DNA of 64,000 nt from sequence record MZ443783.1. The stretch is one strand, 5' to 3'. Both the position numbers and the translations under genes were made by a program. The notes under the pieces are model-generated. The model was given only the letters and a program-made list of their open reading frames with translations, was not told the DNA's origin and searched no databases. Of the stretch, positions 18,612-62,744 are shown piece by piece (the stretch's first letter is position 1; each line of letters opens with the position of its first letter).

Positions 18612-18873
18612 CTCTATCCTCTAAAACAAATTGTAGTGTGCCTTGTATATTTACAGCTTCAAGGCGCTTACCTGTAGGCATTAACAGGCCATTCAACACA
18701 CCCAGCATATCAGCGCTGTGGCAGTCAGGTGCTATCTGGTGAACGTAGATATCATCAGGCACATCACCTGGGTTAAGCTGCCAAGATGTTCTCAAGGCAG
18801 CACCCATGAATGCCGGACGCTCTACCAGATGCCTGTTCAAAAATGAACATACGTCTTCGGCGCTCAACGTCAT
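18577..18873 (-). CDS. Hypothetical protein (98 aa)
   Basis: ATGA overlap with the polymerase stop; overlaps the clamp start by 35 nt. Confidence 0.4.
   Translation of the reverse strand: MTLSAEDVCSFLNRHLVERPAFMGAALRTSWQLNPGDVPDDIYVHQIAPDCHSADMLGVLNGLLMPTGKRLEAVNIQGTLQFVLEDRDEDLPTAEEPR
18648..18656 (-). promoter_or_regulatory. Class-1 promoter-like motif CTGTAAATA
   Basis: Exact copy, 36 nt upstream of the clamp start. Confidence 0.6.
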
Positions 18874-21800
18874 TTCTTACCAATCCCCTTAAGTGCGGAA
18901 CGGAGCATCGACTTACTGATTTTGATTTTCTTAGGAGCACCATCGCCCATCGCAGCCGCTGCTTTCTTAGCTTTCTCGTCTGCTTCGTATTTCTCAAAGG
19001 TTTTGATGTTCTTCGGAAGTTCGGCAAGCCACTCTTTGATGTTCTTCTTGTCCTTGTTGGTGAGTGGATTGACCTTGTCCATCGACCGAATCTTAATGTC
19101 GTTGGCCCAAAGTTGTTTCTTCATCCAATCGGACATAAGGTGATACTGGTCCTGCATGATGCTGTCAGTCACCTTATCAACATCGAGGTCCTTCTCACCA
19201 AGCTCATCACGTTTGACGATCAGACCATCACGGATGAGTTTCTTGAGTTGAACGTAAGAGAAGTTCCAACCCTGTACGTCTTTCTCCGATGCACCGATTT
19301 CAAAGTCAATCTCAGGCACGGATGTGAACGCAAATCCTTCGTGGCGTTTCTGTACGACTTCGACCACTGCGCTGGTCATCGCACGTTCGATCATATCGAG
19401 CGCAAGGAAGATCCATTTATAATCGCAGTCAACAGTCAAGGAGTCGTGTACCGATACGTTCATATCGAAGTCAGGGTACTCACCATTCGCTTTGAAGTAG
19501 TCATACTTCATACGGTCCAGAATACGAATCGCACTCATCATCAAGTCAGAACCGAAACCCTGTACTGGACTGTTTACCGCACGACGGTCACAAGCGGCAT
19601 GAACCATGTTCGCTTCTTTGTGTGACTCAGGCAGCATCAGGCCCCAGAGATGACGACGACGACCGACTGGCGATTCGACATAGAAGTTCTCGTGTGCAAA
19701 CTTCTTGATCTTGTCGAACCATTTTAAGCCAACAGGGAAACGAGTAAGGAACTTGCCTTTGATTTCGGCAATCTCTTTCACGTCACGACCAGTAGACTTC
19801 GCAAGACCTTTATCGCCCTGCTGATAGATCAGACCGAAGATTACGGTCTTAACCGCGTTACGTACGGACTTGGTTACGTCCATTACGTTTGGAATACCGA
19901 AGAAGTATGCGGCGTTGATTTTGTGAACGTCACCTTCTGCTTCGACGCGGTGCTCGATCCACGGGTCAGGTACTGTACGGAAACGATGACGTAACTTACG
20001 GCCTTGCTCGAATACGTCTGCAACGCCTTGGTCACCTGAGATGATCGACCAGCCCCTTACTTCGTGGGCTGAGTAGTCGACCTTGATTAGTAAACGGTTC
20101 TTACGCGCAATCAAGATACGCTTGATCAGTTTACCCATCTCACTACGGCTCGGTACCTGTTGCAAGTTCGGGTCAGACGCTGAGGTACGACCCGTTACAA
20201 CTCCAAGATAACCATACGTCGGTCGGATTGATCTATCGTGTTTGAAGTCTTCCGATTCGCCCCAGAGTTTAAGCAGGCTGTTAACGTAGGCGTTCTTGAG
20301 CTTGTACGCTTTTCCGAGTTTCGAGTAGAGAGCAACAAGCGGTATATCTGCATACGCCGCTTGGAAGTCCTTGTCCAGCTTGCCCGTCTTCTTACCGTTC
20401 TCACGTAGCTGTTCCCCTTCTTTCAGAGGCTTGAGTTTCATCACGTCGAAGAACAGGATTTGCTTATGCTCTGACTTCGACATATCGAACTTCGTGACCT
20501 CGACTTTGCCCATAAGACCCATCTTAGGAACATTGTCGTCTTTGCAGATCAGTTTGTTCGCAGCCTTAACTTCAGGGCTGTTCATGAACTCACGCTCTAC
20601 GTTTCGAATCTCCTCGTTAATAGGAGAGTTTGGCAGGTTGAGCTTAAACAGGTAGTCGATATCAGCACCAGCGCCTGTCGTCTCCAGAATCGAGAACGCA
20701 TGAATCTGGTCGGAGATTTGCTCACTGACCATAGACTCATATTTGGCATACTTGATATCGTTGGCTCGCTTGAGTTGTTGCTCTGCGATGCGGAACGGAA
20801 CGATAACGTCGAGGCCAGCATATTCCTGAACGTTCTCGTCCAAGTCAACGTCGGCAATCGTCGCTCGCATCTCTTTACCGAACGATACTTCATGATACAC
20901 CTGACAGCCGTACTGCATCGTCAGGTTCGCTAAGTTGTAATAACCAGCGCCCGTAACGTTAAGCAATGACTTGGCGTTCTCATCGTTCGCAAACTCACCA
21001 GCCTGAATATCCCACACGTTCGCGGCGTAACTACGAATGCCAAAGTTGGAGCGCATTACGTTTAGGTCGAACTTCGCGTTGGTGTAGATTTGATACTTGT
21101 TCGAGTTCTCCTCAAAGAAGTCTTTGAATAGCTCACGAACCTTGCGCAGTTCTTTCGGACTGAATGGACTGTCGCGGTGATAAATAGGAATGACATATGC
21201 CTTCTGACCGTCATCCGATAACTGCACCGTTAAGATTTTATTCTTGATACGGTTCAGGTTCTCGGTTTCGGTATCGACTGCAACCTTCTTGGCGCGCTTC
21301 ATACGCTTCAAGATTTTCTCAAGTTGCTTGACCTTCGTTACATACACGAGGTCCCAGTTACGCTTCTTACCACACGTAACCTCTGCGATCTTATAGCGCA
21401 TCCCCTTGTTAAGCCACGGCAACATCCAGCGAGCCATGTAGCCGAGCGTGTACGATGAACCAGCAATGTGCATCGGGTTTAGAACGGTGTGATAGCTAAC
21501 GTTCGGCAGATGGACGAAGCTGTGTTTCTTCGAACCATGTTTGACCTTCGTCGGTATCTCAACACCGTACCAGTGCTCATAGTGATCTTTCGAGAACTGA
21601 ATCTTCTCGTTGTTCAGCGCTTTGAACGGCGCCTTACCAAACGTCAGCACGTAGTCAGGTTTGTAGTCTACAATGATTTCCCGAATACGGTCAGCGAACG
21701 CGGCATCGGCATCTTCCTTAAACTGTTCGCCCTTGTCATAGGTCTTGAACATGTTGTACGAGACAACGAGGAAGTTCCAATCGTCGAGAGTCGTCTTGGT

Positions 21801-22037
21801 CGGAAACGTATCTTCAAGATACTGAATCTGGTTTAGAAACAACTCACCTTCTGTCGAAGTAAAGATTCTGCCGCTACGCAGATCTTCGGTCGGCATATGA
21901 TCGAGGACGAGAAGTGCTTTGCCACCTTTAGCGCTTTTACTTACGCTTTTCAAAAGTCGAACGCCATCGTAGGTCTGCATGTCTGCAAACTGTTCAGGCG
22001 GATCGAAGTCGAGGGATATAAACTTTGGTTTTTCCAC
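18870..22037 (-). CDS. polA: Family A DNA polymerase with N-terminal UDG-like domain and 3'-5' exonuclease (1055 aa)
   Basis: Exo: VAVDTET, NAKFDL, YAGLD. Pol: VTGRTSASDPNLQQVP, DYSAHEVR (motif A), RNAVKTVIFGLIY (motif B, Phe at the 762-equivalent position), NSPVQG, SVHDS (motif C). GTG start with AGGA SD. Confidence 0.95.
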   Translation of the reverse strand: MEKPKFISLDFDPPEQFADMQTYDGVRLLKSVSKSAKGGKALLVLDHMPTEDLRSGRIFTSTEGELFLNQIQYLEDTFPTKTTLDDWNFLVVSYNMFKTYDKGEQFKEDADAAFADRIREIIVDYKPDYVLTFGKAPFKALNNEKIQFSKDHYEHWYGVEIPTKVKHGSKKHSFVHLPNVSYHTVLNPMHIAGSSYTLGYMARWMLPWLNKGMRYKIAEVTCGKKRNWDLVYVTKVKQLEKILKRMKRAKKVAVDTETENLNRIKNKILTVQLSDDGQKAYVIPIYHRDSPFSPKELRKVRELFKDFFEENSNKYQIYTNAKFDLNVMRSNFGIRSYAANVWDIQAGEFANDENAKSLLNVTGAGYYNLANLTMQYGCQVYHEVSFGKEMRATIADVDLDENVQEYAGLDVIVPFRIAEQQLKRANDIKYAKYESMVSEQISDQIHAFSILETTGAGADIDYLFKLNLPNSPINEEIRNVEREFMNSPEVKAANKLICKDDNVPKMGLMGKVEVTKFDMSKSEHKQILFFDVMKLKPLKEGEQLRENGKKTGKLDKDFQAAYADIPLVALYSKLGKAYKLKNAYVNSLLKLWGESEDFKHDRSIRPTYGYLGVVTGRTSASDPNLQQVPSRSEMGKLIKRILIARKNRLLIKVDYSAHEVRGWSIISGDQGVADVFEQGRKLRHRFRTVPDPWIEHRVEAEGDVHKINAAYFFGIPNVMDVTKSVRNAVKTVIFGLIYQQGDKGLAKSTGRDVKEIAEIKGKFLTRFPVGLKWFDKIKKFAHENFYVESPVGRRRHLWGLMLPESHKEANMVHAACDRRAVNSPVQGFGSDLMMSAIRILDRMKYDYFKANGEYPDFDMNVSVHDSLTVDCDYKWIFLALDMIERAMTSAVVEVVQKRHEGFAFTSVPEIDFEIGASEKDVQGWNFSYVQLKKLIRDGLIVKRDELGEKDLDVDKVTDSIMQDQYHLMSDWMKKQLWANDIKIRSMDKVNPLTNKDKKNIKEWLAELPKNIKTFEKYEADEKAKKAAAAMGDGAPKKIKISKSMLRSALKGIGKK

Positions 22038-26900: not shown

Positions 26901-29775
26901 GAACACGCACACCGCCGATATCAACGTTGAACGTACCAGTCTGGAGGAAGCTCAGGCCAACGATATAGATCGTGTTGCGCGGAGCCTGCTGGATAACGTC
27001 ATACATGCGGTCTTCGCCCCACGTATTAACAGTGTCAGCAGTGATAGGCACTGCGTTCCAACCATCAACAACTTTGTGGAGGTCATCACACCAGTTCGCT
27101 ACGAGGTTAGACGGACAGATGATCAGAGGACGAATCGTTTCTTCGCCAAGGTCATCCAGCTCTTTGATTAGAGCAGCAACGTCGGTCAGACCGATGATTG
27201 TCTTACCGCCACCAGGTGCGATAAAGATTGTTGCGAAGCGTGGACGACGACGCAGAGTTTTGTGCGCTTCAACCTGATGCGGCAGTAACGCTGCACCTGC
27301 TTTAAGACCTGGGATACGGATATCTTCAATCGTGATACCGCTATCCGGTTTCAGCTTCTCAATCTCCACTTCGGCCTGTTCGAAGTATTCGAGTGATTTA
27401 GGAATCACGTCGCTGTACATCGTGGCGAACGGCAGAATGATTTGTTGCAGACGGTCAGAGCCTGGGGCCTGTTCGTCTTCAATCAGAGAGCTGAACAACT
27501 TCTTACGATCACTACGAGCCAGAGCCTGAGTCATCTCACGATACAGCGCGCCACCGAAGTAGTTATTCAGTCGCGCCATGTCAGACAGCTTGGAGCTTTC
27601 ACCCATCACGAAGTAGTGAGTGTGGTTCGGCAGAGATTCGGTTGCAGCCTGAATGCTACCCATCTCATTGAGAGAGGTCATAATCAGGTTAGACCCACGC
27701 AGACCAGCAGCATCGTTCAGCACACGGAGCATCACGCGCATCATCGTCATTGCAGGACGTTCGTTAGCGAGGTCTGGAATTGAGAAGTCGTTCTCAATCA
27801 GGTTCTGATACAGGTTCTGGTCCATCGGGCTTTCGGCCAATGAAGCATTCTCTGCGTCCATACCGATAGCAACACGCGCCTGCTGCACCAGAGTTTTCAG
27901 ATCAGGAACTTGTTTGTTCTTGAGCATGAACTCATAGGTCTGACAGGTAGATGCGATAATCTGCACCAGCTCGTGGAGGTTAGAACCTTCGGTGCTGTTG
28001 TACTTGATGGTGCTGTCCGAAACAGCTTCCACCAGACGGCCAGCGCCAGATTCTGCTTTCGCCGCTTCGATCATCATGTCGTTAGACACGCGATATGCAG
28101 CCATACCACCAGAAGACTGATTGTGGTGGATGTTACCGATTACGTTAGATGCAGAACGGAAGTTAGGTGCTTCACCAGGCTCTGCGAAGTCGTAGCCAAG
28201 TGAGTCAGCAACGTCCAGAGAGTTCGGCGCTTTCATGCCTACGGTACGTGTCTCTTTAACATCGAGACCGCCACCATTAGACGTGTTCACGATCAGCGCG
28301 AAGTCAGGGTCAATGCCGATGCACACGTTACTGAAACGAGAGAGCGACTTGGCCTTGGTCTGCACTTCACGGTCGAAGTCCAGATTACCGTTCTGAATTG
28401 CGAACATGTTGGTACGCAGGGTATCGTGCTCGGTGGACAGAGGCACACCCTTTTCGAACAGGTCTTCGAGTACGCTGTTGAGAGAAGACTCGTAGGTCTT
28501 AACCATCTCAATGTCGATATCTTCACGACGAGGAAGCACTGCGAGAGTACCATTCGGCATGATCGTCAGACCGTTATCGTCTGCAACCACATCGTTTACC
28601 ACATAGCCAAACTTCTCACGGAGTTTCTTCAACTCAGGCAGAGTGGTGGCCGAGGTAACGTAGCGTGGGATACGCGCAGCACGAGTGATACCAGTACGAG
28701 TAGAGCCAGCAACACGGAAGTAGTAGCTCGCCCAACCCTGGAACCAACGATACAGACACATGGTCTGCGTGTCAGCGCCCTGAGAGATGTACTCGACCAT
28801 TTCTTTTTCGAAGTTAACGATCAGGCCGCCTTCAACGCGAACGTCAGTAGCGAGAGCGACAGGGTTAAAATCGACAGGCGTATCGTGGCTGATTTTCATC
28901 GCTTGAATCTTGCGATCAATCATCGCCTTGCCTGGGATAGGACGAATACCGATCGTCATGAAATCGCCCAGCGCTTCGGCAGCACCTTTGTCCAGATTAC
29001 GGAACAGGTCGATATCCATGTTGTGCATCAGCGGGTGAATGGAGCGCAGAGCCGCGTTATACACAGTCCAGTCTTTATCGAGAGGAATGCGGACCATCTT
29101 CGTTTCGAATGCGTTGGAGTTGGTGCGTTCAACGCCGAAGATATCTTTGTACAGAGTCTTCGCCACACGAATCGCAGCCTGTGCAATATCAGAACTGTAG
29201 GTCTGAATGTTGGCACGTTCGAAGTTGGCGTCATTGTCCACACGAGGACGGTCGCTACCCTGATTGTTCAGAACGTTGAAGTTACCGTTCGAGGCCAGAG
29301 GACTTGTCGGGCATGGCGTACCAGACATGATAATGTCACGACCACCTGGGAAGCGCGTACTGTTTTCAATCACGGCACCAGATGCTGCGGACAGGTGTTC
29401 AGCCAGAGAGGTCTTAATCTCACGACTCAACTTGTCGCCGTTCAGTGACATATTGATACGCATGATGGACAGATCGATGTTGTTCTTAACACGCTTAACA
29501 AAATCGTCTGGCGCTACTTCCAGCATGTCTTCGAACTCTGCACCGTTGGTAACGATGTAGTTGATCAAATCGAATGCGGCGTAGATGCGAGCAACGGTAG
29601 ATGCGGTGAACACTGCAAGGGTTTCGTAGTTACGACGAGACTTCCCTGTAGCGTACATTTTCGACATTTTACCATCGAACTCGGGCGGCAACGTCTTCAC
29701 AGCCAGAGCCTGATTAAACGTATCGGCGATCTGCTGGGTTGCGGTTGCTGAGGTACTGATCATTTGATTCATCAT
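23926..29775 (-). CDS. Giant SNF2/SWI2-type (DarB-like) helicase protein (1949 aa)
   Basis: LLPHQ, APGGGKT, LIICPSNLVANW, LLDESHKVKN, ATGTLV, KLIVFTRY, SEGHNMQ...DTPWSP..YDQSTARIFR motifs at ~25.6-27.3 kb. Confidence 0.85.
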   Translation of the reverse strand: MMNQMISTSATATQQIADTFNQALAVKTLPPEFDGKMSKMYATGKSRRNYETLAVFTASTVARIYAAFDLINYIVTNGAEFEDMLEVAPDDFVKRVKNNIDLSIMRINMSLNGDKLSREIKTSLAEHLSAASGAVIENSTRFPGGRDIIMSGTPCPTSPLASNGNFNVLNNQGSDRPRVDNDANFERANIQTYSSDIAQAAIRVAKTLYKDIFGVERTNSNAFETKMVRIPLDKDWTVYNAALRSIHPLMHNMDIDLFRNLDKGAAEALGDFMTIGIRPIPGKAMIDRKIQAMKISHDTPVDFNPVALATDVRVEGGLIVNFEKEMVEYISQGADTQTMCLYRWFQGWASYYFRVAGSTRTGITRAARIPRYVTSATTLPELKKLREKFGYVVNDVVADDNGLTIMPNGTLAVLPRREDIDIEMVKTYESSLNSVLEDLFEKGVPLSTEHDTLRTNMFAIQNGNLDFDREVQTKAKSLSRFSNVCIGIDPDFALIVNTSNGGGLDVKETRTVGMKAPNSLDVADSLGYDFAEPGEAPNFRSASNVIGNIHHNQSSGGMAAYRVSNDMMIEAAKAESGAGRLVEAVSDSTIKYNSTEGSNLHELVQIIASTCQTYEFMLKNKQVPDLKTLVQQARVAIGMDAENASLAESPMDQNLYQNLIENDFSIPDLANERPAMTMMRVMLRVLNDAAGLRGSNLIMTSLNEMGSIQAATESLPNHTHYFVMGESSKLSDMARLNNYFGGALYREMTQALARSDRKKLFSSLIEDEQAPGSDRLQQIILPFATMYSDVIPKSLEYFEQAEVEIEKLKPDSGITIEDIRIPGLKAGAALLPHQVEAHKTLRRRPRFATIFIAPGGGKTIIGLTDVAALIKELDDLGEETIRPLIICPSNLVANWCDDLHKVVDGWNAVPITADTVNTWGEDRMYDVIQQAPRNTIYIVGLSFLQTGTFNVDIGGVRVRVRGAVEFVNRFRFSYVLLDESHKVKNFSGGQAGSQVHFNTKAVFTAPSVRYARIATGTLVTDRVRDIVGQAALMTPAMFGDSLDVAYDGAKDDIEMIRRAHSRMANHTAFISFKRKHWAFMLPNPIDTFIQVEIDDPSVPNSALHQEVYNAMYEQVLEKLQDAANAAKRKASAGNDDEDDDAGGADDNASDIDEDDIEEGDDLGALLAGNADLNMYFQRMEMMLTDPMGDDVARLTFEAAGVTNFVSAKVLTIIDRIKKHFEVQPERDPMVGEQQIFDWKPGVTPRELDIAVYNGQKYLARKQSEEYKRQALPPSMVPPPDDPDYWKPEVQGKLIVFTRYVRAANAIYNALPENYKKVAVVYHGEVGKLGQNKDANLDAFKTDNNVQILIANEQAISEGHNMQMGSRIIRCDTPWSPGTYDQSTARIFRPDVAAAKLDENGKPGDMAREVVFIDWVMTNKTLEVGKVARLMWKTLEKTRFDEKGNQRYEALDQYKLDPIKMSAKLLIDNNTMEDFAQYFFAKRDLNEIESQEFHEMRKTTVAAMQALPATPALNDFRVMEQTPFVANQKIPDRYGWGLERLLDWTRNRNFTNGENLKDSLNRAPVVTEYGNGVIVSVTARTVDGKLRADSPISTVRVRLAGTGETVSISANKVHIATKVDKADLKKFFEARKPWANEKDRKRATAEANRIEIEDTIKDETETADTVETEKKVVAVARKTARAKQRATNKAEGKPINEGVAEAAGRVRRRKPADLPVLDNTTRRKKPVAAAVEEATGADMALELTPTVYNGFVAIYANATDPDAKALKAFDFVEFGDYVYYDCAYYEDFEKMLDFIEVKKKLAFDKPSEKRLEFVLDFFDESTPRMGFNIKLALKAQEQLKQFFLIRHKAASDKKHVKAYPMVMEDRLRIMFDLNTNPQMKRFVGTKIPNTRKFGTFDVSPGMWIGFVKNVATAKARINKIVKAGYNITNIKKLTTALDRLKLTTTKNKAV

Positions 29776-36908: not shown

Positions 36909-37580
36909 TTAAACGACTACTTTACCTTTTGCTTTGGTCTTAGCGGCTTTCTTGCCACCAGCTTTCTGCGCTGCGGTACCTTTGTGCTTAACGACTTTAG
37001 CAGTGGTTTCTTTACCACCTTTCAGACGCGGCATTGGTTTCAGCTTAGGCTTGACCAGAGTTACGGCTTTCGGTGCTACTTTCGGAGTCACCAGTTTGCC
37101 GTCTTTGATGCTTGGCTTACGTGCTTTGCGCGCGGCCAGACGAGCTTTCTGTTTCAGGATCAGGTTTTTGTAACCAGCTTTCTGTTTAGCAGCAAGGTTG
37201 CTCTTAGCAACAGCCTGACGTTTCAGCAGGAGCTTACGCACTTTACCCTGGGAAACAGCGGTCGCTTTCAGGCCAGCCTGGTATTTAGCCAGACGTTCCT
37301 TCAGGCGCTGCTCGATGGTTTTCGCTTTGCCTTTCTTAGCCTGCTTACGCAGGTGAGTCGCACGTTCGTTGTCGTACTTCTTCTCGGAAGCGGTACGCTT
37401 AGGTGCAGCTTTCTTAGGCTTAGCAGCCTTAGGTGCAGCGGTTTTCTTCGCAGCTTTCGGCTTAGCAGCCTTAGGAGCAGCGGCTTTCTTCGCAGCAGGT
37501 TTTTTACCAGCGGCTTTCTTAGCCTTGGAACCGCCTTTAACCGGGTCGGTCGGGGAAGTGGTTTTGCGTTTTACGGCCAT
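36909..37580 (-). CDS. Histone H1-like Lys/Ala/Pro-rich DNA-binding protein (223 aa)
   Basis: KKAAGKKPAAKKAAAPKAAKPKAAKKTAAPKAAKPKKAAPKR repeats; almost no acidic or aromatic residues. Confidence 0.75.
   Translation of the reverse strand: MAVKRKTTSPTDPVKGGSKAKKAAGKKPAAKKAAAPKAAKPKAAKKTAAPKAAKPKKAAPKRTASEKKYDNERATHLRKQAKKGKAKTIEQRLKERLAKYQAGLKATAVSQGKVRKLLLKRQAVAKSNLAAKQKAGYKNLILKQKARLAARKARKPSIKDGKLVTPKVAPKAVTLVKPKLKPMPRLKGGKETTAKVVKHKGTAAQKAGGKKAAKTKAKGKVVV
37417..37496. repeat. Tandem coding repeat, 42-bp period (two 38-bp copies, 36/38 identical)
   Basis: ggcttagcagccttagg(t/a)gcagcgg(t/c)tttcttcgcagc at 37417-37454 and 37459-37496, encoding AAKK(T/A)AAPKAAKP. Confidence 0.85.
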
Positions 37581-53711: not shown

Positions 53712-54995
53712 TTACTTCTTCTTCTTTTTCTTTTCTTTCTTCGGCTTGTCGTCTTCGTCGTCTTCGCCCATCTTGACTGCCAGCTTACCTTCATAGATAT
53801 CAGCCATGAGAGTAAGCACTTTGGACTCCAACATAATGTCTGCTGGTACGGACGTTGAGTTGAAAGCTACTTCGGCATCAGCCAGTGCGGATTGCAGATA
53901 GACCATGCTAACCAGATTGACTTTGATGTTGTCTTTCTTGGTCATGTTCATGAACATCTTGAGGCCAGCCGACTGCCACTTATTAGTTTCGGCATAATGA
54001 CCTAACACGCCGTGAATAATCCAACGAGCTTTCGCAACGATTGCACGTGGGTTGTTCGCTTCACGCAGGAACTGAATAACACCAATCAGGTCCATCGCAA
54101 GATACGCACCAATCATCTGGACAGCTTTCGCTTCCATATCGATCTCTGGATCTGCTGCTGCGAGTTCGGCAACGAGGTTCTTATCGAAGTCCTCACCACC
54201 TTTCACGGACGCATAGATATTCTGCAACATGGTGATTGCGCCACGCATCTGACCACCAGCATACTCTGCAACCTGATGCAGTGCTGCTTCTGCTTTATCA
54301 CGCGCCTTATCTTTCTTCGGCATGATATCAAGCTGGTCACTGATCTCCAACAGACGCTTATGAATCACGTCAGTAGGAATCGGCCTGATAGGCAATTGCG
54401 TCATGCGACTGATCATCGTGTTCTTCATCTTCTCTGGGTTCGTTGTTACGAAGATGAATACAACGTGCGCTGGTGGCTGCTCGGTGATCTTAAGGAACTT
54501 CGATTCGGCCGCGCTCGACATGAGGTGCGATTCGTCGAAGATGAATACGCGACGTTTGAACATCGGACTCAGCGGTGCGCTGTCCACAATCTTCTGGCTA
54601 CCTTCAACCTTACCAGCATCGCCACCCATATCGAACTCTTGCTCATCAGGGTGTGCGCCACGGTCGTGCATCTCACACGAACGGCATTTGCCACAGGCCG
54701 AGAACGTGTCGCAGTTGATATACTTCGCAACCAGACGCGCAAACGTTGTTTTACCTGAACCCAAATGACCAGTAATGATCATTGTCGAGGGAATCGTTTT
54801 CGACTTCTGCCAACCCTTCATGATCTTAACGATGTGGTCTTGACCAACATAGTCTTCAATCTTCTTTGGTCGGAATTGGTCTGCAAAGTTAATCGTTGTC
54901 AGTTCAACTGACTCGGAAGAATCGCCTTTCTTTTTCTTTGGAGTATCACCACCAAAGGAACGCGACTTCTTCTTTTTCTTTTCTTCTTTAGCCAT
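53712..54995 (-). CDS. dnaX: Clamp loader ATPase, DNA polymerase III gamma/tau-like (427 aa from ATG 54995; TTG 55001 possible)
   Basis: FADQFRPKKIEDYVGQDH, GHLGSGKTTFAR, zinc motif C....CGKCRSC, FIFDESHLM, SRM, GQMRGAI. Confidence 0.88.
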   Translation of the reverse strand: MAKEEKKKKKSRSFGGDTPKKKKGDSSESVELTTINFADQFRPKKIEDYVGQDHIVKIMKGWQKSKTIPSTMIITGHLGSGKTTFARLVAKYINCDTFSACGKCRSCEMHDRGAHPDEQEFDMGGDAGKVEGSQKIVDSAPLSPMFKRRVFIFDESHLMSSAAESKFLKITEQPPAHVVFIFVTTNPEKMKNTMISRMTQLPIRPIPTDVIHKRLLEISDQLDIMPKKDKARDKAEAALHQVAEYAGGQMRGAITMLQNIYASVKGGEDFDKNLVAELAAADPEIDMEAKAVQMIGAYLAMDLIGVIQFLREANNPRAIVAKARWIIHGVLGHYAETNKWQSAGLKMFMNMTKKDNIKVNLVSMVYLQSALADAEVAFNSTSVPADIMLESKVLTLMADIYEGKLAVKMGEDDEDDKPKKEKKKKKK

Positions 54996-56729: not shown

Positions 56730-57305
56730 TTACGCCCTCAGATCAACAAGTATCGACGCACTCAAATCTCGAAGCATGTCACGGCCGAGAGAGGTGTACA
56801 TCGTTTGAGAAACAACTATGCGTTCAAGGAACAGGCGGGAACCAATGACGTCCCTGCCTAACTTCTGCTGAACGAACTCAATGATTGAAGACGGAGGCTG
56901 AATGAGGAACGTGAGTATCTCGGCATCGTGGAGAACGTTACCCATCGCTGTCACAGGTCGCATTTCTGTTTCCTGATCGAGGATGTATGAGATGACTCGG
57001 TCTGCATTGCCTATGTTTGGATAGCGCTTGAAGAATCTACGCACCGCTTCTACGGTGTGCATGAAATCGTATTCCGGTCGGGTCGGCATACGAAGAAAGA
57101 GTGAAGCGAGCAACAGGTTTATTTCTAACTGCGGACCTTGTTCAATGTTCAACATCGCATGTGCGGTCAACACAACATTCAACGAGAAGTCACGAGTATA
57201 GAGCGGGTGAGAGGTCGCTGTCTGATCGAAATAGTCAAGGGCCTGACGCAACCCTTGACGTATTAACAGGTGCTCTGCTTTAATGCGGGACAGGCGTTGC
57301 ATCAC
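56730..57305 (-). CDS. Hypothetical protein, possibly a degenerate HD-domain fold (191 aa)
   Basis: FSLNVVLTA...LLLASLF...VLHDAEIL resembles the HD pattern but lacks the central HD. Confidence 0.4.
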   Translation of the reverse strand: MMQRLSRIKAEHLLIRQGLRQALDYFDQTATSHPLYTRDFSLNVVLTAHAMLNIEQGPQLEINLLLASLFLRMPTRPEYDFMHTVEAVRRFFKRYPNIGNADRVISYILDQETEMRPVTAMGNVLHDAEILTFLIQPPSSIIEFVQQKLGRDVIGSRLFLERIVVSQTMYTSLGRDMLRDLSASILVDLRA

Positions 57306-58276
57306 TCAGCGCCGCGAATCTCTTTCAGGCTATTCTTGATCGCTTTGCGCAGCGTCTTGCCTACGTCAATGCCATCAATGTGACGAGCAAACACGTTGGC
57401 GAATAGCGTGGTTGGATTCTTCATGATCGCTTTGTCGAGGTCAGGACGACCTTCTGCAATCTGCAACTCCCCTGGCCAAAGTTCTGCAACCGCCGCGCTA
57501 TCGTTAGCCGCAATCAGTTCCAGTTCACGGACCGAGATAGAGTTCTGACGTGCAATCGTACGGAAGATTATGTCAACGAAAGGCAGCATGTCTTCGCTAA
57601 CAACGTTCTTCACGTCTTTGGCATCACCAGCACGTTGGAAATCTTCCAACAGACCTTCGAGATGCGTCTGTGTGATCTTCTGGACGTTACGCAGTTTCTT
57701 GAACAGCATCATCCAGCGAACTTTACGCTTAGAACTTAGCAGGTGAGTCCACACTGATTCACCGAGTGCGATCATCAGGCGGTTGTACACGTCAACGCTC
57801 AGGCTATCACGATCAACGAAGACCGTGATCTCATCATGCCATTCATCTTTACGGAATTTGCTGCGGAACGCATGAGTCTTCGACCCGGACTGCTGGACGA
57901 AGTTGATTTGTTTGCAGCGGCGTACAGCTTCCGCCAGATGATATTTCTCAATCACCTTAGGAAGTTTCTTAACGCCGACACGACACGCTTTTGCAACTTC
58001 GGCCTCACGACCGAAAAGAGATAAACGAGGCAGTCCGCCATAAACAGGCATCGAAGCGTATGGTCTGACTGTCACGCCACACACTGACATACCTGGCTCA
58101 GGGTCTGGTCCGAGAACACACAACACATCACCAGACTTCGGACTGAACTTGATCGTCTCAGGGTCTGGCGTACTCAGCGTGTTGGCCAAAAGACCAACAG
58201 TGTTGCCGGTAGCCAGCACCAAATGGTTTTTGTTACCCTGCCTTACAACAAGGTAATCTTTTTCACTATGTTTCAT
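57302..58276 (-). CDS. Hypothetical protein (324 aa)
   Basis: Long ORF with AAAGG SD; weak zincin-like features without HExxH. Confidence 0.55.
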   Translation of the reverse strand: MKHSEKDYLVVRQGNKNHLVLATGNTVGLLANTLSTPDPETIKFSPKSGDVLCVLGPDPEPGMSVCGVTVRPYASMPVYGGLPRLSLFGREAEVAKACRVGVKKLPKVIEKYHLAEAVRRCKQINFVQQSGSKTHAFRSKFRKDEWHDEITVFVDRDSLSVDVYNRLMIALGESVWTHLLSSKRKVRWMMLFKKLRNVQKITQTHLEGLLEDFQRAGDAKDVKNVVSEDMLPFVDIIFRTIARQNSISVRELELIAANDSAAVAELWPGELQIAEGRPDLDKAIMKNPTTLFANVFARHIDGIDVGKTLRKAIKNSLKEIRGAE

Positions 58277-58284
58277 AACGACCT

Positions 58285-58815
58285 TTATAGTTGATCAACG
58301 ATGTTCATCGTGTGAACTTCCGCTGTGTAGCCCTGACGGAAGATGCGACCTTCTGCGCGGCCAGATGCCTGCTCTGCGGAAGGGACGCCCCAGCTTGTTG
58401 CAGGCTCAACCGAGATGAGTGCCTGCTCATCCCACATGTCACCGTCTTCAAGGTAGTCGGCAATCATCTGGAGAGCAGCAGGACGATCGAGGCCCAAGTG
58501 CGCAAGCTCGGCGATAATAAGTTTCGGCGCAGTGGCGTCTTTCATTTCGTCGAGTTCGTATTGCAAATCGGAAAGCGAGTTAACCTGATGGCAGTCAGCG
58601 CTAGTCAGGCCTGCATACTCGTCTTGTCCGAAATAAGCAATTGCAAAGTCAGAAACATCAAGTTGACTGGAAAAGAAATGAGGAGCGTCCACCAGAACAG
58701 AAGGCGCGGCGCTCATCTGGAGAAAACTCATGTATGGGCGTTGCATATCGTGAGCTTCTACCGAACAGGACTTCCCAGCAAGATCTTTCATTATGCTGTG
58801 TGCGAGATTATTCAT
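58285..58815 (-). CDS. Hypothetical protein (176 aa)
   Basis: GAGGT SD. Confidence 0.55.
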   Translation of the reverse strand: MNNLAHSIMKDLAGKSCSVEAHDMQRPYMSFLQMSAAPSVLVDAPHFFSSQLDVSDFAIAYFGQDEYAGLTSADCHQVNSLSDLQYELDEMKDATAPKLIIAELAHLGLDRPAALQMIADYLEDGDMWDEQALISVEPATSWGVPSAEQASGRAEGRIFRQGYTAEVHTMNIVDQL

Positions 58816-58822
58816 TGTAACC

Positions 58823-59038
58823 TCATTTCTCAGGAGTAGGAGTAAAAGGGCTGTGGGTGTACGGGGTTAACTTATCCACATACAGGAAACGAGATGAAGC
58901 ACTACTGTAACCAGAGCGTGGTGCCGATTGCTTTTTCTTGGCTTCGGCCTCACGTCTATCCAGCTCGTCAAAGATACCTACGCGACGGGCGTACTTAAAC
59001 TTCGGATGTACGGAGATATGTTTGACGATAGCTGTCAT
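58823..59038 (-). CDS. Hypothetical protein (71 aa)
   Basis: ATGA overlap with the upstream gene. Confidence 0.5.
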   Translation of the reverse strand: MTAIVKHISVHPKFKYARRVGIFDELDRREAEAKKKQSAPRSGYSSASSRFLYVDKLTPYTHSPFTPTPEK

Positions 59039-60066
59039 TTTTTATATTGTCCTGTAACAATGTAGACAAGGGATTTTTTGGAGACACGCGCATTGACGAT
59101 CAAGTATTTGAACTCTTTCGTCGGCTCAAGTTCTCCAGCCGTCACACGAACTATTGGAATGTTCTGAATCTCACCGAACGTAAGTGTCGTCCCCATCTCA
59201 TTGATTGAGCAGGAAGATGAAAGCGAAACACTATTCAACGACTTCTTTGAAATCATCGAAGGATGTTTACCGTGCTGGCGTTTGGCATCCAACCATTTTT
59301 GCCAGTCGGCTGTCGCGTGGTGCATTGAACGTTTAATCAAAGAGCGTGGAACATCGCCTTCATACTGCTTGCGAAACTCCGTAATGACTTTCGAGTCAGG
59401 AGCACCTGCGGTTACGCGTCGTTTGTCCTTAAGCGCCCCCTTCAAATGCTCTGACCAATGGTCGTAGGCAGCGCCACGGATCTGGATGTAATCATCCATC
59501 ATCTGAGCTTGCGCCAAACTACATTCAATTTCGAATGTCACCAACTTACCGCGATAGCTTGGCGTATCAGCCGAGTGCCGTTCAGCGAGTTTTGCCGCGC
59601 GTGTTTCAGCGATAAGTTTCTCTTTGATACAAGCTGCCCATGAGTACACAAACGTCAATCGCAGATCAGGACCTTGCGCCAGCAAGTCAGGACAGAACTG
59701 CATTAACAGTGGGATAGCATAACCGAGATAGCAACGACGTTCGATGAACGCGGACTTTAGGTCATCAGGATTGATTTTACCTTCACCGAGATTCGCAAAC
59801 AGTTTTCGAGACTGCTTATACGACTCGGAGATATGGGAGCCATCATACACAACATCATCAATGGTAATTCCCGACTCAATGACTTTGGTGTACGCTTCTT
59901 CGATTGTAACATCAGGCCACGTCCTGTACCCAACATCGGCCAGCAGAAAATTCTTATGGCAGAAGAACTCATACATGTGCAAAAAGTCCGCGACAGGCAG
60001 ACTTTCTGGATATACGAATTGTTTGGGCGCTTTCTTTGGCGTGATACTAGCTTTCTTCTTAATCAT
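59035..60066 (-). CDS. Fusion of an unknown N-domain and a TnpB/IS605-OrfB-like WED/REC module, lacking RuvC (343 aa)
   Basis: C-terminal ~170 aa aligns by eye to the TnpB N-terminal half (see findings); ends where the RuvC-I GIDLG motif would begin. Confidence 0.5.
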   Translation of the reverse strand: MIKKKASITPKKAPKQFVYPESLPVADFLHMYEFFCHKNFLLADVGYRTWPDVTIEEAYTKVIESGITIDDVVYDGSHISESYKQSRKLFANLGEGKINPDDLKSAFIERRCYLGYAIPLLMQFCPDLLAQGPDLRLTFVYSWAACIKEKLIAETRAAKLAERHSADTPSYRGKLVTFEIECSLAQAQMMDDYIQIRGAAYDHWSEHLKGALKDKRRVTAGAPDSKVITEFRKQYEGDVPRSLIKRSMHHATADWQKWLDAKRQHGKHPSMISKKSLNSVSLSSSCSINEMGTTLTFGEIQNIPIVRVTAGELEPTKEFKYLIVNARVSKKSLVYIVTGQYKK

Positions 60067-60073
60067 CGCTTTC

Positions 60074-61825
60074 TCACTGGAGTTTGCTGGCTATTTTCAG
60101 ATACTCGCTATTTACAGTTTCCACATCCGTGTAGCCCCTGCTGGCTGTAACGTCACGGCGTAGATCACCCATGCGGTAACCGTTTTCCCATAGACGCATA
60201 AACAACAGGCTGTTAAGAGTCGGCTGCATGAACGGTTTTTCTTTCAATGCAACATCACCCTTATATTCGGTCAAGAGTATCGCGCCATCAAATTCGGCAC
60301 TGCACCATTCGGCTTCCGCTAAAATTTTAAGCAGGTTATGATTCTCCATGCCTTGGATTAAATGACTAAGCACCGTGTACTGTTCCCGCTTGAAGCGATG
60401 CGCAGGTACTTGGTGTGAGCATCCTGAATCGTTTTTGAAATAGTACGCACCGTTACGAGAATAAGAGGAATCTCGTATGCGCTCGCACAATTCACTGACG
60501 ACTTCGGACGCAGGCTTAAACATCGCCTTCCACTTATCCCAAATAAATCCAACATGCTGGTGCATCTCTTTTTCATTCAGTCGAAGTTTCTTAACCGCAT
60601 TGACGATCTTCGTGTCATTCAACAACTGACGATAAATATCAGTAGCCATAGGCTTTTGTTGTTCGTTGTCCGTGCGTGTCTCGAATGATTGCTTGAAATA
60701 TTTCTGGTTACTCCAGCCGCTATAAATTCCCCCGTAGTTGAGAGTCTTGGCTGTACTGCGCGTAATGTTCAACTGCCGTGCAACCCTATCGTGATTGAGT
60801 TGCTCAAGTTCAGGACAATCTAGTCCATACTGTGCCATCAGGTCTAAAAGCAAAACCATCTGAGCATTAGGCATGTCGAAGTTACGGCCATACGAATGAT
60901 CGAAACATAACAGCTTCACCAATTTAGGTAGAGCGGCCGTAGTTCCAAACAATCGTGACCCAACGTGGTTCATTGTGTATTCGTCGTAAAACTCCACCAG
61001 CCTGTCGTTTGGATTATCGTTAACAAGCCTAAACCCGAAGCGACAAATCTTTTTCAGGAACGAATTGAGTCTGAGGTGCAGTTTCTTTCGGCGATTCGTT
61101 TTTGTATTGTGCATTATGTCCAAGAATCGATCGAGGTACAACCGATACGGACGTTGATTGGCCTGAGCCTTGTTTATCAGTTCGATAACCTCACCGCAAT
61201 ATGCTCTGCGATTTTCGAAGTTATGGGGACGAATAAACGAGCGTGGCTTTATTTCGGAGCAGAACGAAGACGTTACCAAGTCGGCTTCGTTTTTATAGAG
61301 GGCCCTTCTACGCACAGGCTTCATGAGATTGTACAGAGGCTCATCAAGCAAGGTCAGTTCGCAGAATATGTCCGTAAACACCTTATTAAGCGTGTACTTA
61401 CGGGCGATCCCCTTAATGTAATCGTAACGAGTGTGGTCAACCTTTCGACCTAACCACGTAGCTACGGAGTATTCCTTGTGATACACCATCGCGTACCGCA
61501 TCTTTTCGTGCTGACGCAGGTAGGTGTGGGTCACTACCGTTTCGTTATAGACGTTTCTGCGTTCCATAACGCCTGATTTATCGAGAAGGTGCATGAAAAA
61601 CCATGCAAGACTCTCGTAAAACTTATCCGATTTTGCTTTAGGTGGCTTAGGGCAAGAATAAATCGTGTCCCAGAAGAACTTGTGGGCCGATTTATTAACC
61701 GTGAACGCCCATCCTGGCATCACGGCCTTCTTGCGGTACACGGGCTTTGCCATTTGGACCTCAAAACATGCGTTTCGTGGGTGATCTTTACAGAATCCGT
61801 CTTTTTCTCGTGGTATGGAACTCAA
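60074..61825 (-). CDS. Divergent PolA-superfamily (TV-Pol-like) polymerase (583 aa from TTG; ATG 61753 with GAGGT SD gives 559 aa)
   Basis: GSRLF, motif A RNFDMPNAQMVLL, motif B RSTAKTLNYGGIY, HLIQGMEN, motif C AEFDGAIL, in the correct order. Confidence 0.6.
   Translation of the reverse strand: MSSIPREKDGFCKDHPRNACFEVQMAKPVYRKKAVMPGWAFTVNKSAHKFFWDTIYSCPKPPKAKSDKFYESLAWFFMHLLDKSGVMERRNVYNETVVTHTYLRQHEKMRYAMVYHKEYSVATWLGRKVDHTRYDYIKGIARKYTLNKVFTDIFCELTLLDEPLYNLMKPVRRRALYKNEADLVTSSFCSEIKPRSFIRPHNFENRRAYCGEVIELINKAQANQRPYRLYLDRFLDIMHNTKTNRRKKLHLRLNSFLKKICRFGFRLVNDNPNDRLVEFYDEYTMNHVGSRLFGTTAALPKLVKLLCFDHSYGRNFDMPNAQMVLLLDLMAQYGLDCPELEQLNHDRVARQLNITRSTAKTLNYGGIYSGWSNQKYFKQSFETRTDNEQQKPMATDIYRQLLNDTKIVNAVKKLRLNEKEMHQHVGFIWDKWKAMFKPASEVVSELCERIRDSSYSRNGAYYFKNDSGCSHQVPAHRFKREQYTVLSHLIQGMENHNLLKILAEAEWCSAEFDGAILLTEYKGDVALKEKPFMQPTLNSLLFMRLWENGYRMGDLRRDVTASRGYTDVETVNSEYLKIASKLQ
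60109..60117 (-). promoter_or_regulatory. Class-1 promoter-like motif CTGTAAATA
   Basis: Exact copy, 42 nt upstream of 60066, inside the 3' end of the TV-Pol-like gene. Confidence 0.6.
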
Positions 61826-62084
61826 ATTGCATCATCAGATTAGGTAGATAGGAGATATCAGCATGTTCATGCAGCATGAGCGCACTATAGTCACAAGAAA
61901 GCAGCAGTCTGAAACCAGAACCCTGCTCCCAGGAAGCATATCCCTTTGAAATAACCATGCCGAAACAGGCGAAAACGTACAACCTTGAATAGACTGGTTA
62001 TTTGGTGTCAATGCAGAGGATTCTTAATCCCAGCATGTGGACGTGCAAAGGGAGTGCTCCCGGGATGAATCTACAGGAAAGTGG

Positions 62085-62744
62085 TTATTTTTTGCGCGAA
62101 ACGCGCTTACCCAGTTTTACACCGATTTGCGTCATAATGCGCTTCACGGTCTCTCCGTCATGGTCCTCAATGGCGTTTGCGAGTTTTTCGCCCTGCTCGC
62201 GTGAAAGCTCAGGCATAATCAGTTTTAGCATCTGCGAACGCATTTTCGCAGACTTTGATTTGCCGCGTGATAGAGATTGTGTGTCCATTTCGTTTGCAAC
62301 ACGGCTCATGGTGCGCTGCACACGACGATCTGCGAAGATATCAGCAAAAATATTGCCAAACAGGTCCTGGAACGAACGTCCACCGCCCATAATGTCGTCT
62401 TTTGTGAAACGAACAGGCTGTCCGAGCGCATTCTGCTTATTGCAGTGCGTGGATTCCACTTCGTTTTGAGTACGTCCACCAGCACGGAAGTTCTCGTCAG
62501 GGCGTGACGCTTTACCCTCTGCACCTGGTTTAGTGTTGCCGTTGCGCAGATCTGCATCGCCTTCAACAGCCTTATCGGGGTCGAACATGTCGTCCGCTGT
62601 CTCGCTTTGGTTAGCGTCAAACGGAATCTTGCCCGTCAGCTTATTCGGGTCAGGCCAGCTCTTTGGAATATCAGAAGCAGGTTGCGCTTTGTTCGTCATA
62701 TCGCCGTTAGCTTCGCTATTCAGGCTGATCATAATACGTGCCAT
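62085..62744 (-). CDS. Hypothetical protein with MARIMISLNS leader-like N-terminus (219 aa)
   Basis: AGGAG SD; low-complexity middle region, helical C-terminus. Confidence 0.55.
   Translation of the reverse strand: MARIMISLNSEANGDMTNKAQPASDIPKSWPDPNKLTGKIPFDANQSETADDMFDPDKAVEGDADLRNGNTKPGAEGKASRPDENFRAGGRTQNEVESTHCNKQNALGQPVRFTKDDIMGGGRSFQDLFGNIFADIFADRRVQRTMSRVANEMDTQSLSRGKSKSAKMRSQMLKLIMPELSREQGEKLANAIEDHDGETVKRIMTQIGVKLGKRVSRKK

Follow-up and report, generated by a model that had tools for sequence, protein, structure and literature searches.

A TV-Pol-type polymerase paired with a TnpB-derived protein in Erwinia jumbo phage pEa_SNUABM_28: a possible two-subunit primase-polymerase

Erwinia phage pEa_SNUABM_28, a jumbo phage of the genus Alexandravirus with a 267-kb genome, encodes a divergent polymerase in addition to a canonical PolA. 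We analyzed a 64,000-nucleotide (nt) stretch of this genome (hereafter, the window; sequence record MZ443783.1, in which a window position is the record position minus 124000), with a focus on the gene located at 60074..61753 on the minus strand, which we denote POL, and on the gene that follows it, d1. By its sequence motifs, profile matches and modeled structure, POL is a member of the TV-Pol family within the family-A polymerase superfamily, and d1 is, according to its structural model, a new helical N-terminal domain joined to the WED-REC module of TnpB without the RuvC nuclease domain. Together, the two proteins may form a two-subunit TV-Pol primase-polymerase that is auxiliary to the canonical replisome of the phage.

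POL encodes a protein of 559 amino acids (aa) (QZE58781.1; stop codon 60074-60076) that is annotated 'hypothetical protein' in GenBank, as is each of the genes around it. The open reading frame (ORF) from which the original prediction started, 60074..61825 (-), is present in the ORF list. Its start, the TTG codon at 61825 (583 aa), is replaced here by the ATG codon at 61753, which is almost certainly the true one, to judge from the sequence, because a GAGG motif is located 5 nt upstream (61759-61762), the close homologues all begin with MAKPVY, and GenBank gives the same start. The only library match of POL is PHROG 30690, a family of unknown function; no match was found in Pfam, NCBIfam or PADLOC, and, with E-value cut-offs of 5-10, none of 15 family members matched any Pfam family, DNA_pol_A (PF00476) included. 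A phmmer search of POL against PDB sequences likewise produced no match. The family is small, with six matches among 1.8 billion representative proteins; a profile search of a set of 5.8 billion proteins yielded no relatives beyond those found earlier, and a scan of IMG/VR recovered the same phages and nothing further.

An AlphaFold model of POL, built on 15 sequences (mean predicted local distance difference test (pLDDT) score 79; confident from about residue 160 on), has the thumb-palm-fingers fold of Pol I-type enzymes and thus contains the palm/fingers fold on which the original prediction had staked its case. The top matches of this model in a Foldseek search against the PDB are all family-A DNA polymerases, the matching AlphaFold-DB clusters are 'family A palm domain-containing' proteins, some of which align from residue 1, and a language-model atlas agrees with this assignment. 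The polymerase core, residues ~176-512 (60218..61228, -), consists in the model of a short two-helix thumb (helices 207-219 and 223-239), a beta-hairpin (strands 241-270), the palm, and the fingers with the O-helix (332-345). Among PDB sequences, the POL family profile matches DNA polymerase gamma best, at its O-helix (motif B) and at a sub-significant level, and an hhalign comparison of the POL family profile with the polymerase domain of Escherichia coli Pol I gives a probability of 1.4%, with isolated motifs only. POL can accordingly be described, as had been proposed, as a highly divergent second enzyme of the PolA superfamily by its fold and motifs, the profile match to Pol I not being significant; because there is no significant DNA_pol_A profile match, it is assigned to family A by structure and motifs, which is also the case for TV-Pols generally. 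Compared with canonical family-A polymerases (Pol I Klenow, T7 gp5, Pol theta and Pol gamma), to which it is ~11-14% identical, POL lacks the 3'-5' exonuclease, and has a short thumb as well as extra N- and C-terminal regions.

All five motifs from which the enzyme had initially been recognized are present, in the order given at the time; two of the three coordinate ranges then assigned were right, that of motif B exactly, whereas that of motif A (60861-87) was slightly off. Motif 2, GSRLF (residues 265-269, 60947-60961, -), contains the invariant Gly265, Arg267 and Phe269. Arg267, the hairpin arginine that contacts the template, is the counterpart of Arg668 in the TGRLSS motif of Klenow, and hhalign sets the family pattern GGRLFE..GFQNLP against TGRLSS..NLQNIP of Pol I. 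Motif A, RNFDMPNAQMVLL (residues 290-302, 60848-60886, -), includes the catalytic Asp293 (60875-60877), which is invariant along with Asn291. Motif B, or the O-helix, RSTAKTLNYGGIY (residues 332-344, 60722-60760, -), contains the invariant Lys336 as well as Tyr340 and Tyr344, which are aromatic family-wide; hhalign places Asp293, Arg332, Lys336, Tyr340 and Tyr344 of POL opposite Asp705, Arg754, Lys758, Phe762 and Tyr766 of Klenow. The HLIQGMEN helix motif (residues 464-471, 60341-60364, -), with the invariant His464, Gly468 and Glu470, is presumably the counterpart of the 'QGxAAD' motif that precedes motif C in PolA, given its position in the fold. Motif C, AEFDGAIL (residues 486-493, 60275-60298, -), harbors the catalytic Asp489 (60287-60289) and aligns with the QHDG of gp030 from the Microcystis cyanophage Ma-LMM01. 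The FDG form of motif C, which had been noted initially as typical of the family, is indeed present in POL, but it is peculiar to the allele class of POL, and the family consensus is HDG.

In an alignment of the active site across 12 homologues that are 18-21% identical to POL, Gly265, Arg267, Phe269, Lys280, Asn291, Asp293, Lys336, His464, Gly468 and Glu470 are invariant, and Gln298, Glu487, Asp489 and Gly490 are kept in all full-length homologues, being missing from one truncated sequence only. Both catalytic aspartates are therefore conserved (Asp293 throughout and Asp489 in every full-length homologue), in line with the claim that the catalytic residues are intact. An aspartate of the fingers that is conserved in TV-Pols is only partly kept in the POL family (D320 region). 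The ratio of nonsynonymous to synonymous substitution rates (dN/dS) of POL, measured against the SNU35 allele (82% identical at the nucleotide level), is 0.024. Since the active site is conserved at such low sequence identity and selection on the gene is of this kind, POL is almost certainly enzymatically active, so far as can be judged from the sequences.

The TV-Pols were described in 2008 by Iyer, Abhiman and Aravind, who predicted them to be primase-polymerases of a third kind and already saw a linkage with IS605-type transposases (PMC2579912). According to this description, their family-A core is minimal and comprises a thumb of two helices, an arginine in the hairpin, two aspartates and an RxxxK motif in the fingers; they lack any nuclease link, occur in viruses and transposons, and are accompanied either by a D5-like helicase or by an N-terminal domain together with an integrase, a resolvase, or an IS605 or IS630 transposase (PMC2579912). 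The same authors list cyanophage Ma-LMM01 among the TV-Pol carriers, in a text that gives no gene name (PMC2579912). Ma-LMM01 gp030, a 506-aa hypothetical protein, adjoins an IS605-type TnpB/TnpA pair, and because its size and these neighbors fit, we infer that it is the TV-Pol that was meant. Compared with gp030 by hhalign, the POL family profile reaches a probability of 97.4% (E = 9.6e-12), and the 369 aligned columns extend from the N-terminal domain to motif C inclusive. When the ORFs in the first 50 kb of the Ma-LMM01 genome are searched by hmmsearch with the hidden Markov model (HMM) of the POL family, gp030 is the sole match (E = 9.8e-10). The TV-Pol label initially attached to POL is borne out by this profile homology and by the relatives of POL in integrase-bearing mobile elements.

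POL thus shares with gp030 and the other TV-Pols the minimal core, the hairpin arginine, the pair of palm aspartates, the fingers lysine, the lack of a nuclease and the N-terminal family domain, as well as the occurrence in viruses and integrase-bearing elements, and both POL and gp030 adjoin genes of the IS605/TnpB type. It differs from them in being encoded by a jumbo phage with a 267-kb genome and a PolA and primase of its own, in the FDG form of motif C and the variable arginine of the RxxxK motif in its family, and in having as its partner a RuvC-less fragment of TnpB rather than a full transposase. A D5-like helicase was not found either fused to POL or beside it.

The N-terminal domain, residues 1-175 (61229..61753, -), is conserved family-wide and aligns with the N-terminal part of gp030; it is probably a TV-PolN-type domain. 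Model confidence is patchy in this region, the structural matches to PolA start only at residue ~150-177, and, besides the start Met, the only invariant columns are His55 and Leu101. The absence of an exonuclease domain from POL, asserted at the outset, is in agreement with our results: none of the acidic Exo I-III motifs was found in residues 1-175, and there was no exonuclease match in any search. The N-terminal region as first delineated requires correction in two respects. It was taken to span ~290 aa, whereas the non-polymerase part amounts to ~175 aa, residues ~176-290 being the thumb and the beta-hairpin with motif 2; and it was called unrelated, whereas it is common to gp030 and every member of the family.

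The d1 gene (59035..60066, -) encodes a protein of 343 aa and starts 7 nt past the POL stop codon, so the two genes are probably co-transcribed and translationally coupled. The order of secondary structure elements in the d1 model (pLDDT 84) hinted at the N-terminus of TnpB, and structure searches then confirmed the connection. The top matches in the PDB are ISDra2 TnpB; among the best 30 matches to AlphaFold-DB clusters, about two thirds are named transposase or TnpB, and 29 align from d1 residue ~148-175 onward, in nearly every case through the N-terminal region of the matched protein. Language-model features for d1 agree with TnpB as well (0.96). No sequence match of d1 to Pfam or to the TnpB of Ma-LMM01, gp031, was found, so that the relation to TnpB is seen in structure and language-model features only.

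The WED-REC module that d1 has in common with TnpB and Cas12 comprises residues 171-343 (59038..59556, -) and ends where RuvC would begin; no RuvC nuclease domain was found in d1, the protein stopping at residue 343, at the RuvC boundary. No guide RNA associated with d1 was found either: there is no Rfam match, and no non-coding space is available downstream, where the next gene, d2, overlaps d1. On these grounds, d1 is to be regarded as TnpB-derived and not as a TnpB. In library and structure searches, d1 and d2 are not nucleases. The WED domain of TnpB and Cas12 is a nucleic acid-binding module. The dN/dS of d1 is 0.067.

All the genomes examined from Alexandravirus, Salmondvirus and Yoloswagvirus, and that of Yersinia phage fHe-Yen9-02, carry an intact POL at the same locus. 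Decay of the gene in three phages, suggested by their short coding sequences (CDSs), was considered and rejected: the CDSs AD1_214 of Dickeya phage AD1, JA13_200 of Dickeya phage JA13 and SHZ78_208 of Erwinia phage phB78 start too late owing to start-codon errors, and the uninterrupted ORFs, of 538-545 aa, align with the homologues over the full length. In congeneric phages, the flanking proteins are 80-92% identical, whereas the POL alleles are only 21-28% identical. In the POL tree, a type A clade contains the sequences from the window, SNU35, SNU7, Yoloswag and SNU5, a type B clade contains those from AD1, SNU1, phB78, Yen9-02, SNU20, SNU30 and JA29, and a third clade consists of the copies from bacterial elements, the deep order of the three clades being without resolution. 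The two allele classes, which occupy the same site within one genus, are as distant from each other as they are from the copies in bacterial mobile elements. Positive selection on POL within an allele class is ruled out by the dN/dS of 0.024. Homologues of d1 occur only beside POL; they are carried by the type A phages, by Yoloswag (at 30% identity) and by JA29 (at 27%).

The nearest non-phage relative of POL (P0013) is carried by small integrative elements whose enterobacterial hosts are Klebsiella spallanzanii, Hafnia paralvei, Scandinavium manionii and strain RIT691. The core of these elements consists of DUF2787, RadC, a tyrosine integrase, (AlpA), a 381-aa protein and the TV-Pol, and this enterobacterial TV-Pol integrative element has apparently not been described previously. 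The 381-aa protein shows repeatable, sub-threshold matches (E = 0.005-0.017) to the Rep_trans family of replication initiators. The cargo downstream varies: in a metagenomic copy, it consists of a type I restriction-modification system and an AAA_15 ATPase, neither of which is present in any of the four genome copies. In Vibrio phage GR7B, the POL homologue has a Rep helicase on one side and RNase HI on the other, with a ligase also near. Judging from the genes encoded there, these contexts point to replication. Another relative (P0011) is carried by a metagenomic phage contig on which two QueC-like proteins and one DUF5591 protein are also encoded, which suggests 7-deazaguanine DNA modification in that phage.

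We consider that there is about an even chance that POL and d1 constitute a two-subunit TV-Pol primase-polymerase auxiliary to the canonical replisome. Under this scheme, d1 would supply the binding to DNA (or RNA/DNA) and the choice of site, as the protein MP does for the polymerase CcPol, and POL would initiate short DNA chains or elongate chains without proofreading, the pair working at initiation or in second-strand synthesis alongside the canonical PolA, the clamp loader and the DnaG-type primase. The physical interaction between POL and d1, de novo priming, the sugar of the substrate and the biological role of the pair are what we infer here, and the functions first suggested for POL (priming, origin-specific synthesis or RNA synthesis) are likewise candidate roles. 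The two-subunit reading is favored because of the precedent of CcPol-MP, the nucleic acid binding by WED domains, the linkage between TV-Pols and IS605 elements, and the existence of a PrimPol-TnpB operon.

CcPol, encoded in SCCmec, is the only TV-Pol characterized biochemically, and the residues that exclude ribonucleotides are conserved in it (PMC7581432). Alone, CcPol is a primer-dependent DNA polymerase, and when bound to MP, a small OB-fold protein that binds single-stranded DNA and is encoded just downstream, it is a dNTP-using primase (PMC7581432, PMC10061031). POL-d1 resembles CcPol-MP and the Bacillota pairs of a polymerase with a single-stranded DNA-binding protein (Pol-SSB) in that the polymerase is an exonuclease-less family-A enzyme with a short thumb and belongs to a mobile-element lineage (PMC7581432, PMC10061031); furthermore, the polymerase gene is directly upstream of the gene for a nucleic acid-binding partner, and CcPol itself has been placed in the TV-Pol family. 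POL is likened to CcPol here by published description, and there are clear differences: d1 has 343 aa and includes the WED-REC module of TnpB, whereas MP is an OB-fold SSB of ~100 aa; no helicase gene follows POL-d1; and the steric-gate glutamate is not conserved in POL. The second precedent comes from the work of Altae-Tran et al., who reported a PrimPol-TnpB operon in Deinococcus (PMC10691335). Like the exapted or nuclease-dead TnpBs and this operon, POL-d1 would combine a TnpB module with a priming polymerase in one operon and reuse the module outside transposition (PMC10691335). Those TnpBs, however, retain RuvC, active or inactivated, and a guide RNA, whereas d1 has no RuvC and a new helical N-terminus, and the Deinococcus PrimPol is an enzyme of the archaeo-eukaryotic primase type, whereas POL belongs to family A.

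The auxiliary status of POL follows from the other replication genes of the phage, because a canonical PolA, a clamp loader and a DnaG-type primase are also present. The PolA, with its 3'-5' exonuclease, is encoded at 18870..21980 (-; 1036 aa), separately from POL, which agrees with the view of POL as a second polymerase; the clamp loader is at 53712..54995, and an SbcC-like protein and helicases are encoded in the window as well. The DnaG-type primase, with a CHC2 zinc finger, is encoded outside the window, at positions 192415..193398 of MZ443783.1 (pEaSNUABM28_00233), ~6.6 kb from POL and on the same strand; it is annotated 'hypothetical protein' and matches the annotated DnaG-type primase of Pseudomonas phage PaBG with E = 1e-58. 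POL as the only primase of the phage is thereby ruled out.

Several observations weigh against the two-subunit scheme. With a DnaG-type primase already encoded, a second primase is not obviously needed. Most type B phages carry, in place of d1, an unrelated protein of ~155-175 aa, and no homology between d1 and this ~170-aa type B partner was found, so a TnpB-like partner is not obligatory for the POL family; nor was a TnpB-like neighbor of the POL homologue found in the mobile-element relatives. The family HMM detects no POL at the syntenic site of the more distant relative PaBG. Within the active site, Arg332, the arginine of RxxxK, gives way to K, N or V in some family members and hence is not invariant, and the position of the steric-gate glutamate is occupied by Gln298 or by the variable Val300, depending on the alignment of the loop that follows Asp293, so that the canonical Glu is not conserved. 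The non-coding leader of POL contains no iterons or origin-like repeats. Finally, a search for sequencing runs that contain this phage found no RNA-seq run and one DNA metagenome only (5% of words).

The strongest competing explanation, which we nonetheless regard as unlikely, is that POL is a primer-dependent polymerase for repair, gap filling or translesion synthesis, comparable to Pol theta or Pol nu, which serves the recombination and repair of the phage without priming. The relatives of POL in small mobile elements belong to the replication core, beside the Rep_trans-like gene, rather than to repair operons, and the tight coupling of POL to a nucleic acid-binding partner resembles the logic of the CcPol-MP primase; both features argue for the primase-polymerase scheme over a repair enzyme.

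Somewhat less probable than a repair function is that POL-d1 is a domesticated or selfish remnant of a TV-Pol/IS605-type element that acts mainly in its own maintenance or has no role in phage growth. Several features of the locus are compatible with such an origin: only the stretch from d3, the gene beyond d2, to the POL leader is strongly variable, among neighbors that are 80-92% identical; the two allele classes at one site have diverged from each other as far as from the bacterial mobile-element copies; the relatives reside in integrative elements, and d1 is TnpB-derived; PaBG is without POL, and gp030 of Ma-LMM01 adjoins IS605 genes. Against this explanation, there is no transposase, integrase or terminal repeat beside POL in the phage, and the gene is under strong purifying selection and is intact at the same locus throughout the genomes examined from Alexandravirus, Salmondvirus, Yoloswagvirus and Yersinia phage.

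Returning to the two-subunit primase-polymerase, a more specific version of it, which we rate as improbable and slightly below the selfish-remnant explanation, is that POL-d1 is a targeted primase. In this version, d1 would recognize a DNA site through protein contacts or a guide RNA, open or hold it, and hand the template or an RNA 3' end over to POL, with DNA synthesis starting there. If true, the pair would be a programmable or sequence-addressed device for replication initiation and would account for the recurrent linkage of TV-Pols and PrimPols with TnpB that has been seen since 2008.

We deem it very improbable that POL-d1 is a host-interaction module involved in counter-defense or superinfection exclusion, through a decoy or blocking nucleic acid or as a protein that escapes host sensors. 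Such a module would explain the deep allele replacement at a fixed locus within one genus, and in bacterial islands relatives of POL lie beside defense cargo (type I restriction-modification and AAA_15 ATPases); yet there is no match to a PADLOC defense family, the polymerase belongs to the conserved core of the bacterial islands and not to their variable cargo, and selection within each allele class is purifying.

Least probable of all is that POL makes RNA, either as a single-subunit RNA polymerase in minimal form or as a synthase of RNA primers, with d1 possibly directing it, given that its structural matches to DNA polymerases are almost twice as good as those to RNA polymerases, that it lacks a promoter-binding N-terminal domain and a specificity loop, that hhalign of its profile with T7 RNA polymerase gave no match, that CcPol, the one characterized TV-Pol, uses dNTPs, and that PaBG carries a gene for a sigma-70-type factor common to its phage group (PMC7412058), from which the lineage is taken to transcribe with the host RNA polymerase.

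The immediate surroundings of the two genes include a third gene of the apparent operon, d2 (58823..59038, -; 71 aa), whose start ATG shares bases with the stop codon of d1 (ATGA) and whose product is 52-63% identical across the genus. Upstream of POL is its leader (61754..62084, -), 330 nt of non-coding sequence with a promoter-like site, TTCAGA-18-TATAGT, and the GAGG motif at 61759-61762. The promoter-like site is overlapped by a block, TTGTGACTATAGTGCGCTCATGCTGCAT (61868-61896, -), which is non-coding, unique in the window, and kept in SNU35, SNU7 and, partly, Yoloswag; a weak terminator-like hairpin (61921-61934) precedes it. No Rfam family or significant RNA fold was found in the leader. 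The variable island, 58285-62084 of the window, extends beyond POL to include d3 (176 aa) and d2, which are 52-66% identical to their congeners, and is bounded by flanks at 62085..62744 and 57302..58276 that are 80-92% identical, the right breakpoint coinciding with the stop codon of a 219-aa gene at 62085. In PaBG, a segment of ~1.5 kb (116152-117630) without an annotated gene or long ORF is found where the Erwinia and Dickeya relatives carry POL. Elsewhere in the window, a 1949-aa SNF2/helicase-C protein (23926-29775, -; PHROG 21391, DNA helicase) adjoins the replication genes, and a tandem repeat at 37417-37520, with 42/30-nt units and 94% matches, lies inside the ORF 36909..37580, where it probably encodes a repetitive segment rich in Ala and Lys.

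The POL group is a new, previously unannotated clade of the known TV-Pol family, and, as far as our literature search shows, it is also new for a TV-Pol to be in fixed pairing, across a lineage of jumbo phages, with a TnpB fragment that lacks the nuclease. The clade provides intact TV-Pols that evolve under purifying selection at one fixed locus in cultivable jumbo phages of Erwinia, Dickeya and Yersinia, with all copies so far annotated 'hypothetical', and connects these phage genes to an enterobacterial integrative element whose core includes an integrase, a Rep_trans-like gene and a TV-Pol. It thus offers a tractable phage system for the role of a second, proofreading-less family-A polymerase beside a full replisome, and a natural case in which the nucleic acid-binding module of TnpB, entirely without the nuclease, is paired with a polymerase. 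Should POL and d1 indeed act as a site-directed primase pair, they would be of mechanistic as well as biotechnological interest.

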